Assembly (NCBI GenBank): GCA_047495785.1
Contig: JBLDXI010000038.1
Span: forward strand, 248,001 to 312,000
Source: Lepidodermella squamata
Lineage: Eukaryota > Animalia > Gastrotricha
DNA: 64,000 nucleotides
Direction: 5' to 3'
Below, piece by piece: positions 4,190-63,515 of this stretch; within the stretch, counting starts at the first letter, position 1; each line of letters starts with the position of its first letter. Both the position numbers and the translations under genes were made by a program. The notes beneath the pieces are model-generated. The model ran no database searches, had not been told where the DNA came from, and saw nothing but the letters and a program-made list of their open reading frames with translations.

Positions 4190-7100
4190 ATGAGTAAGAA
4201 AGGAGGAAGAATTGTCAAGGCGCCGAGTGAACTTGTCGCTCTAGGTTAGTATCAATACTTTTTCGATTTGAAATTGGTGAAATGACAGCTTTCAGGATCC
4301 GCTCCTGTCACATCCACTTTCAAGAGAGAATCGGCTCCTCCTACTGCCTCAGGTTCTGTCAGACCTTTGGCCCCTCCTGAAAAAAGAGCCAAGTTACAAC
4401 CGGTTGTACCTGTCAAACCTAATGTAGCAAAGAAATCAGCGGATCTGCCTAAAAAAGACGCTTCTATATCAGAGCCGCCTCCACCTGCTGCTTCATTTGA
4501 TGTCGAACAATTTTACGCTTTGGTTTCTGGAAATGTTATTCCATCTGCCCAATGCGACTTGATGCTAAAGCGGTGCGCTATTTATATAGCCAACAATGTA
4601 GCTAAGCTTGACAATCAATTTATCATGTCCCTTTTTCATCTGGTGAATGAACGTCCGGAGTTGTTCAGAACGAGCATGACCCTAACTGCCTTTTCAGCAC
4701 TGCTCCACTCGAAGCCATATTCTTCTCAGGAGCGCAAAACGGTTATGCTGCCGCCTGTGATTGCTGCCAATGTTCTTTTCCTGGCCTATCGCCATGAGTC
4801 ATGCTGGCCATCTGAATTTATTGCTTTCTTCATTGAAGATGCTCTTGGTGAGCGAATTTGGGTCGAAAGACCTGAGTGTTCGCTATTTGTGTATCATTTG
4901 GTGAAAGCATTTTCAACTCGCTTGCCACCTCATTTGGAAGAATCCATCAGAGGATCAGTCATGAAAAAAGGTGAGAAGCGGTATTTTCCCATGTCAAAAA
5001 GTTTTAATGTTTGTTGGGTCAAATTATAGGCTTCAAAACGATCAACGATACCGTAATTGCCTTTCAGCGATGCCTAGCGGCCATCAACACGAATCTTTCT
5101 AATATTCCGGATCAATCATCGAAATTCAGTGCTGACTGGGATTCTGTCGCTGGTTTGGTCAGCGAGTATGTTCGTGAATTCATCTCTAGGAAGCAAACAG
5201 GCGAGGTTCAACTTCAGAATCTTCTGAAAGTCATGCTCCTTACATGTTGCTTTGCCGAAATAAGGTGAATGATTATTTACTTTTTATTTGTTATCTAATA
5301 TCTAACTTATGTCTTAATCAGAAAAATAGCTTCTGAGAAGCTAGAGTTTTGGCTTCAAAATCAGAAAATAGTCAAACTCGCTCAAGATCTCTTAATGACT
5401 GTTTGCATGAATTCTTCTGGTGATACATCGATGGAAACTGATTCTGTAAACGCTATTATTAAAGTAAGAACAACTTGTGTTTTAATTATTTTTTTACGTC
5501 GACTTTTTCAGCTAAAATATGCTTCTAAGCAAAAGCATCTGTCTTCTCATTTTCTATCTTGTATTCGGCAACTTTTATCGTCGAACCCACCGCTTGCGCG
5601 TAAGCTGATCGTGCAACACGTAGCTGGTGCCGAGTTGGTGCCACCAACATCTGGTCCTCGTCCCATCGCCAATGTTTCGCTACTGGATGCCGCGTTTTCC
5701 GTCGATGGTGGTTGGGCAACAAACCACATACTTGCTGATTATTTTGGAGAAATTATTTTTACCGCGAAAGAAGATCCTCTGAAAGGCCTAAGAACTGCTT
5801 TGCGCGACATTGTAACTGGCGTCAAGAGTCCGCAATTGAGCCTCAAAGTATTCGTTGATGTATTGCTCAAACTGACTGACAAAACTGGCAGTGACAAAGC
5901 TCTTCGCGATCGAGTTATCGTCAGTGTTGCCGATATCGTCTGCCTTTGTCAGCAACTTCTAGTCACCGAATTGATAGTCAATGCGTTTGAAAGCTTCAAA
6001 ATGTCCGACCCGAATTCGTTCGGATCGCCCCTGCCAGCTGCTGTGTTGGAGACAACTTCCCAAACTGAAACGATGCTTCGAAAATTTCAAGAGCAAGTCG
6101 CATCGATTCAGTTATCAGCTGCGAAATGGTGGCTTGGTTTGAAGCCGGGCGGAGAAGCTTTGGGAACTGGCTTGAAAACATTACTGATTATGGATAATCC
6201 GATGACCTATGTACAGCGTGACAATTTTCCGGCTGAGCCTGAACGGTCGCAAATTTTCCGAATCCTCACTCAATACATTCCATCGTCTGAAAGCATGTTT
6301 CAAATGATCATTCAGTCTCCTTATGCAAGTGAGCAGCACTTCTACGCGTACCAGCTCATGGAAATCTTGTGTGGCTTGTTGGCGCGAAATGCAACTTTGG
6401 CTCGAAGATCGCTCCCAACCATTATTCCGTTCAAAAACTCCGATTTGATCAACATTTTGCTCAACCATTCAAGGTATAACGTCGATAAATCCTACGGCGA
6501 ATATCACGATTTGGCTGTCACTTCGTTGTACTGGAAAGCCTGGTTGGTTGTTCTTCTGTCGGTTGCTGTCAACCCATCTGGTCTCGGTGCGATTTTCTGG
6601 CGTAATTATCCGACGCTGCGCTACTTGATGGAAATGTGCATGACCGGCTGTTACGAATTTCCTTCTGTTGCCGTCGCTTCTCAAGCACAGGATTTGGCTG
6701 AAGAAAAACGAATTGCAGAAGAAGAGCACGCCGCTATTTCGATGCTAAGCCAGAAGTTGAACGCTTCACTCGGTAATCAAGTAATGTATTTTGACCCGAC
6801 CGGGCCTGCTCGTCGACCGCCAGAAGCATTTTTTGGTGAATTGTCGCGGCTGAATGACTTGATTGGCATTGGTGCCATGCTCTGCAAATCACGCGATCCC
6901 GATTTCCTTCAAGCCCTAACCACACAGTCTCAAACTGCTGGACGACCAATGCCCTGGTTGAGGAATCTTATCCTGAATGCCGATGACGCGCTATTCGTTC
7001 TTCCCGTCCATTGCGTTTGCCAATTCGTCCTCGATGTCGAGCAAATGCCTGATGAAGCGAAATCGCCGCAAGAGGCTGAAAAATGCTCGAAAATCTACGA

Positions 7101-48943: not shown

Positions 48944-49010
48944 TATTCGAATTGCTATTTTTACGTTATTTTATCCCTTATTTTAACAAATCTTAGAGCT
49001 TTAATTGGAA

Positions 49011-50687
49011 ATGGACGATCCGAAAGTCATTGAGGCGATTGATAAATTGTCTCACTCGGGGGATGTCGACGAATTGCAAACTGCGCTGATGGATTTTTCA
49101 TTGCGCATCGATGCTAATATGTGTTCGCAGGCACTGCGTGAACGTCTTTGGGTGGCTTTGTCGTCGAATCAGCGTTTCTGGCGGTTGTTCTCTGACGAAA
49201 AAGACCCGACTTTGCCTCAAATGGCCGCTCATGCCTTGGCGTCTTTCGCTGGCGACGAATTCCTACTTGGCTGGCCGATTCTAGGCGAAATTCTGCTGAA
49301 ACTTGCCACCCGATTGAAGGACATTCCATCTGAGAAAAAAGCCACCCTTGAGTCATTTGCTCGAGACATTCTTGTACTCTGCTTAGCCTGCTCTCGTCAA
49401 CCAAATCTTCGCTTGCATATTGCTAATTCTATGATCCAAGTCTCAAAGGCTGTGACGCGGCCTAGTTTCATGGCTAATCCGCAATTCTTTCAATATTCTG
49501 TCGATGTCATGCGAAATCTGGCGATGTCTGATAAATGGTACCGCGATGGCGCTGTTCGGTCGGTTTTTACATGGCTGGTTGGATTAGGCCTTCGTCTGTT
49601 TGTCGACGATCAGGCCGCTGAAAAATTTGAATTCGCACGTCAGACTGGACTGGTCATGATCAACTCGGCGCCTCCATCTTCTGCGAAACATCGACAATGT
49701 GTCATCGATTCATTTTTGCCCGAGTCATTGCGAGTTCCTTTAGCTGATTCAATAAGAGCGGTCATGCTGTCGCGGAGTGTCATGCTTTCGAAGCGCCACC
49801 TCTCTGCTTTAGTTGTTTTCAACGCTGGTCTGCAGCGCTGGATGTGCCGAGGGGACGGCGATTTTTGGCTCTTTTCCACCAAATCCAACTTATTCCCATC
49901 GCCTGATGGTATTTTTTACACCTCTTTTTCCTTTCTCACATTTTATTATAATTTTGTAGATATTACAAAGCTGATTCCGATGTTAGCCGTTCAAACATCA
50001 ACCGAATTTGTTCAAATAATTTCCGAAAAACTGGGCGATTCTGGCAAGAAAGTCGATTCTGAAGAAGACCAAGGAATTGCCGCCAGTCTACAACTCATGG
50101 AGGATCTGTTAGCTTTTATCGTATTTCGCAGCGACGATTCGAGTGAAAAGGCTCTGTCTGCCACTGTTCTACTCGAAGCGCATCGCTGTCTGCGAGAAGC
50201 TGCTGTCGGTGCCATTCAGCAGTTGGCCGAGCATGATTTCGAGCAACCTGATAGCTCTGGGATGTACAGCGAAAAAGGCGGTATTATGCTGGCTTGCTTC
50301 AGATGGGCCTGTCGATTTGTTGCGCAAGACGCGGCAACTATGGAAGCTGATACCCTGGCCGCGCTCGTTCGTTACGGCACCGATGGGCTGAGCGCGGTAT
50401 CGCTGCCTACCGTCAACTTAATGCCGATGTTTTTCGCGGCTCTTGGCAACATTTTGTCCCTGAGAGACGATGCGAAGGGCAAAGACATTATTCGACGGTG
50501 TTTCATCGAAAATGGACTTCCGAATTCCACCGTTTTCAAAGCAGATACGTATCTCGAATACCTGTTACTTCTAGTCGACGGGCCGTGGAAGCAGAAAGCT
50601 GTTGAGGTCGAAAGCGAAGAAGGCAAAGAGTTGCTCGATTCGCTGCGGAAAGATCTTTTGGATGTCCGCGAATCGTTGAAAAGCTAA
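49011..50687 (+). CDS. NCDN: Neurochondrin-like protein, with a probable in-frame intron at 49909-49959
   Basis: DELQTALM...RERLWVAL...RLF...ALASFAGD, KLIPMLAVQTSTEF and MLACFRWACRFVAQD fit the neurochondrin pattern. Confidence 0.65.
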   Translation: MDDPKVIEAIDKLSHSGDVDELQTALMDFSLRIDANMCSQALRERLWVALSSNQRFWRLFSDEKDPTLPQMAAHALASFAGDEFLLGWPILGEILLKLATRLKDIPSEKKATLESFARDILVLCLACSRQPNLRLHIANSMIQVSKAVTRPSFMANPQFFQYSVDVMRNLAMSDKWYRDGAVRSVFTWLVGLGLRLFVDDQAAEKFEFARQTGLVMINSAPPSSAKHRQCVIDSFLPESLRVPLADSIRAVMLSRSVMLSKRHLSALVVFNAGLQRWMCRGDGDFWLFSTKSNLFPSPDGIFYTSFSFLTFYYNFVDITKLIPMLAVQTSTEFVQIISEKLGDSGKKVDSEEDQGIAASLQLMEDLLAFIVFRSDDSSEKALSATVLLEAHRCLREAAVGAIQQLAEHDFEQPDSSGMYSEKGGIMLACFRWACRFVAQDAATMEADTLAALVRYGTDGLSAVSLPTVNLMPMFFAALGNILSLRDDAKGKDIIRRCFIENGLPNSTVFKADTYLEYLLLLVDGPWKQKAVEVESEEGKELLDSLRKDLLDVRESLKS

Positions 50688-53103: not shown

Positions 53104-54345
53104 TTATGCTGTATCAGTCTGAAAGAAATGAATCAATTATTCCGTGCACACTTTACCGCCATTTGTAACTAACCTGCATCCTGTATTCTTCCATCTGCTT
53201 GTCGAGGTCTTCTTTGCTGAGAGCGGGTCCAGTACGGCCTCCACGTCCGCGACCACCTCGTCCGCCTCGGGCACCTCCTCGGCCACGCGCTCCGCCACCA
53301 TTCGCCGCGCCGCCAGAGCTTGCTCGACCACCACCACCACCACGCTTATTACGGTTGAAACCTCCGCGATTAGGTGCGCTACCAATCCTGGATAATCATC
53401 GAGTACAGCCATGACGGTTGAAGTCAAGTTAAGCAAGTAGAGGCTGTTGTACCGACATATACCGGAGCTGCCGCGATGTTATTGCATGGCACAACGCGCG
53501 ATCAGCTGGCGGGAGTTGGCCCAAACAAGCCAATAAAATAATTCTCAAAAATTAATGTACGACTATTACTTGCATAGTCGTACGACGACGCTTAGCTAGC
53601 TGTCGTTTGTCATGTGGCATAGCCACTTCATGTTGAGAATTTATTACCACAGATCTCTACCGAGATCATTCAATAAGCTGTGCGTTGTGCTCACCTTGAA
53701 GCCAAGCTTGCAGGTTTCGGGGCGCCACCGACGACTGCCACGTGCATGGCTCTTCCTACATTTCCCATAAATAGATGAGACTTGGTAGATAGTAGATAGC
53801 ACAAAACACCAACCGTCGAGAAGACGGCCGTTATATTCATTAACGGCAGCAAGAGCTTCCTTCTGATTGCGATACACGACATCAGCTGTTCCTTGGGATC
53901 GCCCGTTGGCATCGTAGTGAACGCAAGCCTTAACAATATGGCCGCAGCGGCTGAAGAGCTCCTGGATATGACACGCAAATTAGCCAACGTTACACATAAA
54001 CAGGAAACCACATCGACTAACATTGATATCTTGATCGTTTACACCGAAGTCAAGGTTGGAAATGGCTAAGCGAGCTGGTCCGGCAGGCGCACTGGCCGCG
54101 CCGTTTGACTTGTCATGCTGCCATTTTCCCGAGCCCAGAGTACGACTCTTCAAGGGCGACTGAGAATTCAGTCGCTTCATTCCAGGCTTAGCGCCTCCTC
54201 GGCCTCCGCGATTTCCCGATCGTCCACGAAACCCAGAACCACCTCTATTGCCGCCACGGTTACCACCACGGCCTCCAGGTCCCTTCGATTTCTTGTTCTG
54301 CTTGATGATGTCATCCAGCCCAAGTTCAAGCTTAGCTGTCGCCAT
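53104..54345 (-). CDS. ALYREF: mRNA export adaptor ALYREF/THOC4/Yra1. Exons 54345-54022, 53961-53814, 53755-53695, 53387-53174, 53118-53104
   Basis: N-terminal UBM (LELGLDDII), KWQHD, RRM (ISNLDFGVNDQDINELF...VHYD..GRS.GTADV), RGG region and C-terminal UBM (SKEDLDKQMEEY). Confidence 0.95.
53532..53645 (-). other. Structured intronic RNA element (four-way junction) in ALYREF intron 3
   Basis: An outer 9-bp stem AATTCTCAA/TTGAGAATT encloses three hairpins, including a perfect 10-bp GTACGACTAT/ATAGTCGTAC stem. Confidence 0.7.
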
Positions 54346-55468
54346 AGTTAGTATTCGGAATTCGGAATGAAATTCAAGAACTATTCAAATGAGGGGATGC
54401 AAAGTTAGCACTAATTGCAGATCAAAAAAGGTGCGGGACGAGGATGAATCACAGGTGATGGAGCGATGACGTGAAAAGACAAACCTTGCTTACGAATGGC
54501 GTTGAACGAAGCATCGGGCGCGCAACGCATTTTCAAAATGGCGTTTAAAAACAATGAATTAAAGTTTATTATTTAATTTTTAAGTACTTAATGATATTTT
54601 TTATATTAAATGTGATGCTCATTTGAGTTGGCGCGGGTAAAATATTTGAATTATTGATGGATGTTTCGGTAAAAACGAACCCTACCGCCTGGCCCTCGAG
54701 CTGTGGAACCTATCATGGTCCCAAATGAAAAGCCGGAACTCAAGTACACAGCGAGTAGATGACTGAATTCGCAGATCCTCCTTTCGTTTCTATTCAAACC
54801 CAACGATTCTTTTTGTTTGGTGATGATAAAGTATTGACTAGTTAAGTTGTGGCGTCTTTCGTCTTTTCGACTGGTGCTCTAATCTCGATTCTCGATTTTC
54901 GATCAGCTAATTTTATGTCCATCTAGAATTGTCTAGAAGTATGCGTGCTCGTTTGTTTGTATCGTAAAGTAGGAAAACAAAATACTGTCTACCGGCCTAC
55001 CTTCGCGCTAGATCCAAATATTGCAATATAGTCCATACTCTGAATCCTTTTAATTACTGTATTTTGTTGCAATGTAATGGAAACAAATAAAGATGATGAA
55101 AGATGAAGAGAATCTCAACTTGGAATATGTTGGCCACCCGCGCGGTTCGGACCTGCTTAAAAATGCAACGTAGTACCTTCTAATCTGGATTTCGCTTTGG
55201 TTAGCCTGACAATGCGTTAGATGTGCATTGATACATCATATCTTTAAAATTACTGCCGCCTTATGAGGCAATGTTGTTCACTCGTTGCTATCTCAGTTTT
55301 CTTCGAAGTATATTTTTTAAGATCTGTTTTCGGCTTTGTTTTGGTTTTTCTGTAGGGAAATGAGTGAGAGACTGTTTCGTTGCGGCTATTCACAGTGCTT
55401 CGGCGTGGGTTCTTTATTTGGTTTTTATTATCTATAGGTATTAACTAGTATTGTTGACAGCATAAATA

Positions 55469-56635: not shown

Positions 56636-58083
56636 ATGTTACGCCGAGTCACTAGCCAAGGCATTCGAATCTCGAATGCTCTGTTTGCCAAGCACCAAAG
56701 CGGTCAGGTCACGCTTTGCCGTAATATGTCTCATTTCCCGATCAATGATGACTTTTACGGGTTGTCACCCGAGCAAAAGGAATTTCGCAATGTAAGATTT
56801 TCAATACCGTCTTCAAAATTCCACCAACCAATCCCATTTTAGACTGTTTTCAACTTTTGCCAAAAAGAATTGGCTCCTCATGCGGACAGGATAGACAAAG
56901 AAAACAAGTTCGACCAATTCAGGCCGTTCTGGCGGAAGCTTGGTGATATGGGTCTGCTGGGAGTCACCGTCCCTACGGAGTACGGTGGCACTCAACTCGG
57001 CTACCTCGACCACGTCATTGCGGGCGAAGAAATTAGCCGCGTCTCCGCTTCCATTGGTCTATCTTACGGTGCCCATTCAAATCTTTGCGTCAATCAGCTC
57101 CGAGTTCATGGAAACGAACATCAGAAGAAAAAGTACTTACCGAAGCTATGCAGCGGCGAATTCGTTGGAGCGTTGGCCATGTCTGAGCCGAACAGTGGAT
57201 CTGACGTCGTTTCTATGCGGCTTCGAGCGGAGAAAAAGGGCGACCATTACGTTCTTAACGGTTCGAAGTTCTGGATTACGAACGGGCCTGAAGCTGATGT
57301 TCTCATTGTATACGCAAAAACCGATCTTTCTGTTGAGGCTAAACATGGAATAACAGCTTTTATCATTGAAAAAGATATGCCGGGCTTCAAAGCAGCTCAG
57401 TATCTTGATAAACTAGGAATGCGTGGCTCTCCAACCTCCGAGCTCGTATTCGAAAATGTCAAAGTTCCCGGTAGGTTTTGATCTATACGCGTAATAACTC
57501 ATGGATTTATTATTCTAACTTTAGTTGAAAACGTCATGGGCCCTGTAAATAAGGGTGTCTTCGTTTTGATGAGCGGGCTTGATATTGAGCGTGCCGTGCT
57601 TTGCGCTGGACCTCTCGGAATCATGCAGGCAAGTTGCGACGTTGCTTTTGACTACGCTCATACACGCGAGGCATTCGGTCAAAAAATTGGAACCTATCAA
57701 TTGCTTCAGGTTTGTTTCCATCTAAACACTAACAATATTCAGTATCGACGGTTGAATTTCAGGGCAAAATGGCTGACATGTACGCTGCCTTGGCTTCTTG
57801 TCGGTCATATACCTACAACGTTCTGCGTCAACTCGACCGCGGAGAGCGCTCAAATCGCGACTGTGCGGCTTGTATTTTGCTGGTTTCTGAAACCGCGACG
57901 AAAGTTGCTCTCGATGCTATTCAAATTCTGGGAGGCAACGGTTACATCAATGACTACCCGACTGGTCGCTTCCTTCGCGACGCCAAGTTGTTCGAAATCG
58001 GCGCTGGAACAAGTGAGGTTCGTCGCCTCATTGTCGGACGCAGTATCAACGCCGAGTACATGAAAATGAGCAAGAGTGGTTGA
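56636..58083 (+). CDS. IVD: Isovaleryl-CoA dehydrogenase, mitochondrial. Exons 56636-56791, 56843-57470, 57525-57709, 57763-58083
   Basis: [47 protein letters not shown] (IVD-type catalytic Glu) and [11 protein letters not shown]. Confidence 0.97.
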
Positions 58084-63257: not shown

Positions 63258-63405
63258 TCTAATTTAACAGACTTGTCCTTAATCAACTTAGCTAGCTTCT
63301 TCTCATTTTCAAGGGGTTCATCATTATGTTAATCTCTGGATTTAACCGCTTGGAAAATGAGAAGAAGCTAGCTCAGTTGATTAAGGACAAGTCTGATAAA
63401 TTAGA
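63258..63405. repeat. Long inverted repeat with ~60-bp arms and a ~25-nt spacer
   Basis: CAGACTTGTCCTTAATCAACTTAGCTAGCTTCTTCTCATTTTC pairs with GAAAATGAGAAGAAGCTAGCTCAGTTGATTAAGGACAAGTCTG with 1 mismatch. Confidence 0.95.
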
Positions 63406-63515
63406 AAAATAGCCACTCTTAATTGTCTTGATACCGAGTTGTGCTGAATCGTGATGATGACTTCATGTTGTGTGCTTTTCATTTTGACACTAAATGTTTT
63501 ATCTTTTGTTGTTTA

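Follow-up and report, generated by a model that had tools for sequence, protein, structure and literature searches.

A selectively retained ALYREF intron with a conserved 3′ half adjoining a four-way RNA fold

Here we describe the only long intron of an ALYREF/THOC4 orthologue, intron 3, which is partly and selectively retained in polyadenylated RNA and places a stop codon in frame immediately after the exon. Judged by alignment with a syntenic orthologue, the conserved element of this intron is the part adjoining a stable four-way fold, not the fold itself. Intron 3 is probably a regulated, unproductively retained intron, by analogy with those of yeast YRA1 and human CHTOP, and the four-way junction within it is most likely neutral or, at best, accessory. 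The earlier note on this DNA had proposed the junction as a cis-element controlling intron retention; its idea of a special intron is supported, whereas its choice of element is not.

Gene structure

The gene lies in the 64-kb window (the whole stretch of DNA that was analysed), and its model was re-derived from the sequence:

53104–54345, minus strand: coding region of the ALYREF/THOC4 orthologue, five exons
54345–54022, minus strand: exon 1
60 nt, minus strand: intron 1, splice joint in cDNA contigs
53961–53814, minus strand: exon 2, RRM_1 match
58 nt, minus strand: intron 2, splice joint in cDNA contigs
53755–53695, minus strand: exon 3
53694–53388, minus strand: intron 3, 307 nt, the sole long intron, partly retained in polyadenylated RNA
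53387–53174, minus strand: exon 4
55 nt, minus strand: intron 4, splice joint in cDNA contigs
stop at 53104, minus strand: short last exon

From the N to the C terminus, the translation comprises an LGLDDIIK motif, RGG tracts, WQHD, a central RRM, a second RGG tract and a C-terminal EDLDKQMEEY. We take LGLDDIIK and EDLDKQMEEY to be the N- and C-terminal UAP56-binding motifs, respectively. Exon 2 matches RRM_1 (E 7e-9), and a search of the RRM profile against solved structures placed ALY and THO complex subunit 4 at the top (E 1.8e-16). The translated motifs, the RRM_1 match and the structure matches bear out the earlier identification of the host gene as ALYREF, and the lengths given for intron 3 (307 nt) and for the other introns (55–60 nt) were likewise correct. 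The splice sites of intron 3 (AAG/GTGAGC ... ATCCAG/G) are equal in quality to those of the neighbouring introns.

The surroundings of the gene were also mapped. A SMART adapter joined at 54388 marks an approximate transcription start for ALYREF, about 43 nt 5′ of the ATG, and in the cDNA contigs a plus-strand poly(A) tail that follows 52672 marks the 3′ end of a convergent neighbour that lies tail to tail with ALYREF. Upstream, an acyl-CoA dehydrogenase gene (56870–58060, plus strand) is divergently oriented, an arrangement kept in a metagenomic relative and hence a case of conserved microsynteny. An open reading frame of 560 amino acids (49005–50684, plus strand) contains no Pfam domain, and none of the 8000 best word-sharing candidates from a 5.8-billion-protein collection is related to it at E <= 1e-10.

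Retention of intron 3 in polyadenylated RNA

Retention was read from the assembled contigs of a cDNA run, X2, which comes from the same species (at least 99% identical, with the SMART adapter at 54388 and with poly(A) tails). These contigs show the splice joints of introns 1, 2 and 4. Intron 3, by contrast with these introns of the same gene, relative to which its retention is selective, is covered from exon to exon by two contigs (53361–53490 and 53461–53722) at a word depth of about 139 that is flat across the intron. The contig joining exons 1, 2 and 3 has a depth of 638 and ends exactly at 53695, the point at which the coexistence of spliced and unspliced forms would force a de Bruijn graph to branch. 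Upstream of 54450 the depth is zero, and by bin arithmetic introns 1 and 4 have next to none; contamination with genomic DNA is thereby excluded. Intron 3 is thus present in roughly one-fifth to one-tenth of the transcripts, as a rough ratio of assembled-contig depths. No splice joints internal to intron 3 were seen in the cDNA contigs, so this is plain intron retention and not the inclusion of a cassette poison exon.

The retained intron is closed to translation almost at once:

53691–53693, minus strand: an in-frame stop, UGA, reached one codon into intron 3 (AGG UGA), read from the sequence

When intron 3 is retained, this UGA truncates the protein directly after the RRM, and so immediate a stop makes the retained transcript unproductive. 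Under the established rule for nonsense-mediated decay (NMD), a stop upstream of a later splice junction makes a transcript a target. Since intron 4 is spliced downstream of the UGA, the retained transcript would have the layout of an NMD target.

The conserved part of the intron

Only one more distant relative was found, the metagenomic contig L001 (to which L002, L003 and L007 are identical), so that conservation and covariation rest here on two or three sequences: the window, L001 and one relative of 97% identity. The ALYREF protein of L001 is 61% identical to that of the window in exon 1 and 80% identical in the RRM exon, and the locus is syntenic, with the acyl-CoA dehydrogenase gene divergently upstream as in the window. 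Its ALYREF gene has introns of 63 and 54 nt and a single long intron of 218 nt, which interrupts the same codon as intron 3. Like its counterpart in the window, this long intron starts GTGAGCAC and carries AGG-UGA (4556–4561).

Searches by shared words for further close orthologues, based on exon 1 and on the RRM profile, returned the L001 species alone, and cluster members of the neighbouring genes pointed to contigs whose ALYREF locus is identical. An exhaustive profile search yielded distant ALYREFs only, of which one is an intronless gene and another a short Logan contig whose reading frame is uninterrupted; scans of metagenomes by peptide patterns and by a DNA pattern of the conserved intron gave no match. 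A distant ALYREF from a Logan assembly, L004, was rejected as a comparator because its long intron lies at a different codon: this intron of about 490 nt (2665–3158 of L004) interrupts the LLDG codon, the position of intron 2 of the window and not of intron 3. It contains GTGATGA ... CTGA, which resembles a C/D-box pair, and an intronic snoRNA is possible there.

The noncoding parts of the window were compared with L001 by local alignment with shuffling, with these results:

53388–53531, minus strand: 3′ half of intron 3 against the L001 intron, z 7.9, 0/300 shuffles
53532–53667, minus strand: the element of the earlier note, z 0.1
5′ half of intron 3, whole, minus strand: z −0.2
intron 1, minus strand: z 1.0
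last intron, minus strand: z −0.5
3′ downstream region: z 0.4
upstream region: z 1.6

The sole noncoding stretch of the locus that aligns with L001 is therefore the following:

53388–53531, minus strand: conserved 3′ half of intron 3

As for a cis-element controlling ALYREF intron retention, the earlier note is upheld in so far as the intron is special, being long in the syntenic orthologue, selectively retained in cDNA and closed by an immediate in-frame stop. It is not upheld in placing the element at the junction, since the conserved part is the adjacent 3′ half. Conservation with compensatory changes at 53532–53667, which would have backed that placement, is absent from the comparison with the L001 intron. 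The difference between the window and L001 at the junction is either a gain in the lineage of the window or a loss in L001.

The blocks shared by the two 3′ halves are UUGGCUUnUUUGG, AACAUyGC, CAGCU, UGUCGG, AACAGCC, CCGUC and UACUCGAUrAUU, and the spacing from AACAGCC to TACTCGAT (UACUCGAU in the RNA listing) is 36 nt in both species. Two candidate structures, each modelled from two species, lie within them:

53466–53507, minus strand: candidate hairpin C, in independent minimum-free-energy (MFE) folds of both species
53398–53457, minus strand: candidate helix P, in MFE folds of both species and in an RNAalifold consensus (U-G versus U-A)

In hairpin C, an outer AGCU/AGCU stem is kept, whereas the inner 5-bp stem is UCGCG/CGCGG here and AUGCA/UGCAU in L001, so that both arms have changed while pairing is preserved; this pair-by-pair comparison is a manual reading, as MAFFT/RNAalifold left the 5′ strand unaligned. 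Helix P pairs UGUCGG (53457–53452) with UCGAUG (53403–53398), and ACAGCC (53447–53442) with GGCUGU (53410–53405). The independent MFE folds of the two species pair like blocks, namely UGUCGG with UCGAUr and the AACAGCC region with a GU-rich segment just before UACUCGAU. Helix P covers roughly positions −11 to −23 from the 3′ splice site. The stability of the conserved half is not significant against shuffles (z about −0.6 to −1.0), and the RNAalifold support for its helices is marginal.

The L001 intron also contains a 12-nt direct repeat, GUUGGCUUUUUG, at 4642–4653 and at 4697–4708, of which the window has one clear copy (53533–53520). It may be a repeated protein-binding motif.

The four-way fold

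Read as minus-strand RNA, 53532–53667 forms two neighbouring units, first a 6-bp hairpin and then a 9-bp outer stem within which lie three hairpins of 5, 8 and 10 bp:

53652–53667, minus strand: hairpin 1, 6-bp arms and a 4-nt loop, pairing probability 0.99–1.0
53540–53641, minus strand: four-way junction, 9-bp outer stem 53641–53633 / 53548–53540
53626–53614, 53606–53585 and 53583–53557, minus strand: inner hairpins of the junction, from the MFE fold

The MFE is −45.7 kcal/mol, the centroid structure is the MFE structure, and none of 200 shuffles is as stable (z −5.31). In the partition function of the whole 1.3-kb pre-mRNA, every helix of the fold retains a probability of 0.66–1.0. A GC-corrected sliding scan of both strands of the window ranks 53532–53667 as the second most stable 136-nt locus. 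The architecture described in the earlier note was thus recovered, but the AAUAA/UUAUU extension of the outer stem amounts to just 3 bp after a bulged A and the CAUG...AUG extension of the second hairpin is absent from the MFE structure. All 38 base pairs are Watson–Crick, with no G-U pair, and the plus strand folds equally well (z −5.66). Because both strands fold alike, the signal is that of a cluster of palindromes at the DNA level and not a strand-specific RNA signature.

Just one 136-nt fold of the window exceeds it in stability, and by a wide margin: at 63258–63410 (GC 0.36), the MFE is about −74 kcal/mol and z about −9.6 on either strand. This long inverted repeat is nearly perfect, has arms of about 60 nt and may represent a hairpin RNA gene, a MITE or a foldback element. 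Within intron 3, an AAUAAA hexamer (53640–53645) overlaps the 5′ arm of the outer stem; no poly(A) end at this hexamer was found in the cDNA contigs. Sequestration of the 5′ splice site by a 9-bp long-range repeat (53690–53682/53497–53489) was considered and rejected: the repeat is paired in the fold of the isolated intron but has a probability of 0 in the full pre-mRNA, and it is also broken by a substitution at 53689 in the close relative described next.

This relative is represented by run X6, from a different organism, in which a contig about 97% identical to the window spans 53400–53745 and differs from it by eight substitutions and one insertion. Five of the substitutions fall within 53532–53667 (53661, 53650, 53649, 53595 and 53535), and all five are in loops or linkers. 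Given 76 paired and 60 unpaired positions, the hypergeometric p is about 0.015, rising to about 0.04 when the two adjacent changes count as a single event. That the substitutions avoid the 76 paired positions is a hint of selection on the stems, and it speaks against a neutral reading. However, divergence is 5/136 in the element versus 3/159 in the rest of the covered intron and is thus not lower in the element, and stems that are unchanged leave no covariation to be seen in this relative. In the conserved half, the X6 substitution at 53458 would add a U-A pair to helix P, as in L001.

Alternative explanations

The junction itself could be the functional cis-element, a platform in the pre-mRNA to which ALYREF or another export or splicing factor binds, setting retention or export. 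Its exceptional stability, independent of context, its seat in an intron that is truly retained and the confinement of the X6 substitutions to loops and linkers (p about 0.015–0.04) speak for this, and small perfect hairpins abound in the 5′ half of the L001 intron too (z −2 to −3 in chosen sub-windows). But the sequence is not conserved in the syntenic orthologue, the helices lack G-U pairs while the antisense strand folds equally, X6 divergence in the element does not fall below that of the rest of the intron, and Rfam holds no match; we consider a functional junction unlikely. Its origin might instead lie in a MITE or another mobile insertion, of which it would be a relic without any role at the RNA level, and whose terminal inverted repeats would be the 9-bp outer stem. 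The perfect 9-bp repeat AATTCTCAA/TTGAGAATT, with its copies about 100 nt apart (53540–53548 / 53633–53641), would suit such an origin, as would the AT-richness of the element (GC 0.38) relative to the conserved half, the strand symmetry of its palindromes and its location where intron 3 shows no alignment with L001. Yet the flanks, ...GGTAATA and ATTTTAT..., show no target-site duplication, no second or partial copy occurs in the 64-kb window or in the fetched loci, and assembly unitigs from two independent data sets cross the element with no break and no rise in depth, so that its 31-mers are unique in those data sets. Three nested internal hairpins are, moreover, not typical of MITEs. Identity with a MITE family, which the earlier note had named as an outcome that would count against a regulatory element, was not shown within the 64-kb window, the fetched loci and these unitigs, and we consider a mobile origin distinctly unlikely.

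Two further readings were weighed. Without any regulation, an intron of 307 nt might simply be spliced slowly in a genome of 55–60-nt introns, with its hairpins arising by chance or as by-products of mutation. Splice sites as good as those of the neighbouring introns, and a depth known at the level of contigs, are compatible with this. Simple slowness, however, leaves unexplained why L001 has a long intron at the same codon, why the immediate stop is shared, and why 145 nt are conserved when no other noncoding part of the locus is, and it appears improbable to us. Alternatively, in line with the intron-hosted noncoding RNA that the earlier note had offered as a second option, a small RNA with a gene of its own, such as a miRNA, a snoRNA or a tRNA-like RNA, might lie in the intron. 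The length of the intron fits this, the conserved block ends in ACAGCC 54–55 nt from the 3′ splice site in both species, which is reminiscent of the 3′ end of an H/ACA RNA, and L001 has motifs like a C box and a D box. Against it, neither the window intron nor L001 has an Rfam match at E <= 10, ARAGORN finds no tRNA, and contig depth is flat across the intron. A C/D snoRNA was rejected because the AUGAUGA ... CUGA of L001 lacks a terminal stem and the window lacks both boxes. For an H/ACA snoRNA, the ACAGCC spacing is suggestive, but the hairpin before ACA is too short for a canonical arm, so that an adequate 3′ hairpin is missing, as is an H box, leaving this class unsupported. The arms of the 10-bp perfect hairpin are too short for a miRNA precursor. 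With no Rfam family and no tRNA-like or snoRNA signature, the hosted-RNA alternative is scarcely credible.

A working model

We place somewhat more belief than doubt in the account as a whole, in which a conserved and selectively retained intron has its regulatory core in the 3′ half and a junction that is neutral or accessory. On retention of intron 3, the reading frame stops after one codon, and either the protein would be truncated after the RRM or the transcript would become an NMD target. The 3′ ~145 nt (53388–53531) are the conserved and probably regulatory core, able to form the hairpin at 53507–53466 and a helix in which the nucleotides shortly before the 3′ splice site would be buried. 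The four-way junction lies in the variable 5′ half and is restricted to close relatives. It resembles a young palindrome cluster at the DNA level, for which an inverted duplication, a template switch or an insertion may have been the source. By folding on itself, the junction would bring the splice sites effectively closer by about 109 nt, and such shortening might keep a long intron spliceable in a genome of 55–60-nt introns; or the junction might modestly slow splicing.

A more specific version is tentative and, to us, rather doubtful: ALYREF may autoregulate through the retained intron, with the 3′ ~145 nt providing protein-responsive helices over the region of the branch site and 3′ splice site, in convergence with YRA1, and with the junction as a lineage-specific addition that tunes the rate of splicing. 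Control by the ALYREF protein itself, the function of the 3′ helices, and both where the junction came from and what it does are inferred; the fold, the retention, the early stop and the pattern of conservation were observed directly. Excess Yra1 is toxic in yeast and is restrained by its intron, and ALYREF dosage matters. We found no retained-intron feedback circuit described for an animal ALYREF in the literature searched. The locus is a compact, testable case, in which an intron of 307 nt brings together a stop right at its start, a conserved block of 145 nt and a structured module that can be separated from it. Were the circuit confirmed, export adaptors in distant lineages would have reached retained-intron feedback independently. 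The locus also illustrates that the most eye-catching RNA fold of an intron need not be its conserved element.

Comparison with known systems

Template switching during replication makes hairpins with perfect Watson–Crick arms, no G-U pairs and equal folding of both strands. The junction has these same features, although no parental or donor sequence was identified for it. Yeast 'zipper' stems shorten long introns through base pairing between the 5′ splice-site region and the branch-site region. As in such stems and in the intronic structure of SUS1 (PMC4691836), a self-folding module in a long intron of a short-intron genome would alter the effective distance between, or the accessibility of, splice sites. 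The ALYREF junction differs from zipper stems in being a closed local module.

Genes for RNA-binding proteins use unproductive splicing through conserved noncoding elements, including the poison exons of SR proteins (PMC4379411). Intron 3 shares with these a conserved intronic sequence in the gene of an RNA-binding protein and a premature stop in the alternative isoform, but its conservation is moderate and not 'ultra'. Closer in function is human CHTOP, a TREX component and GAR-motif protein that, as one report states (PMC8765754), keeps its own level in check by means of an NMD-coupled retained intron. Both cases combine an mRNA-export adaptor bearing RGG/GAR tracts with a retained intron; the gene, however, is a different one, and the CHTOP mechanism is competition with hnRNP H.

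The nearest parallel by family is YRA1, whose intron is unusually long for its genome, is inefficiently spliced, gives unproductive intron-containing RNA and carries multiple modular elements that govern what becomes of this RNA (PMC2864733). Both introns belong to the same protein family, and in each gene a single intron far beyond the genome norm is inefficiently spliced and yields intron-containing RNA. The YRA1-type traits are seen here as 307 nt versus 60, 58 and 55 nt in the window, as 218 nt versus 63 and 54 nt in L001, and as a retained depth of about 139 versus 638, a rough measure. The two systems differ in that YRA1 pre-mRNA avoids NMD and is broken down by an Edc3p-specific pathway, and in that dependence on protein level is shown for YRA1, whereas intron 3 is known from sequence and cDNA contigs. 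The YRA1 intron interrupts its gene before the RRM. Since intron 3 lies after the RRM, the two introns would be analogous and not homologous.
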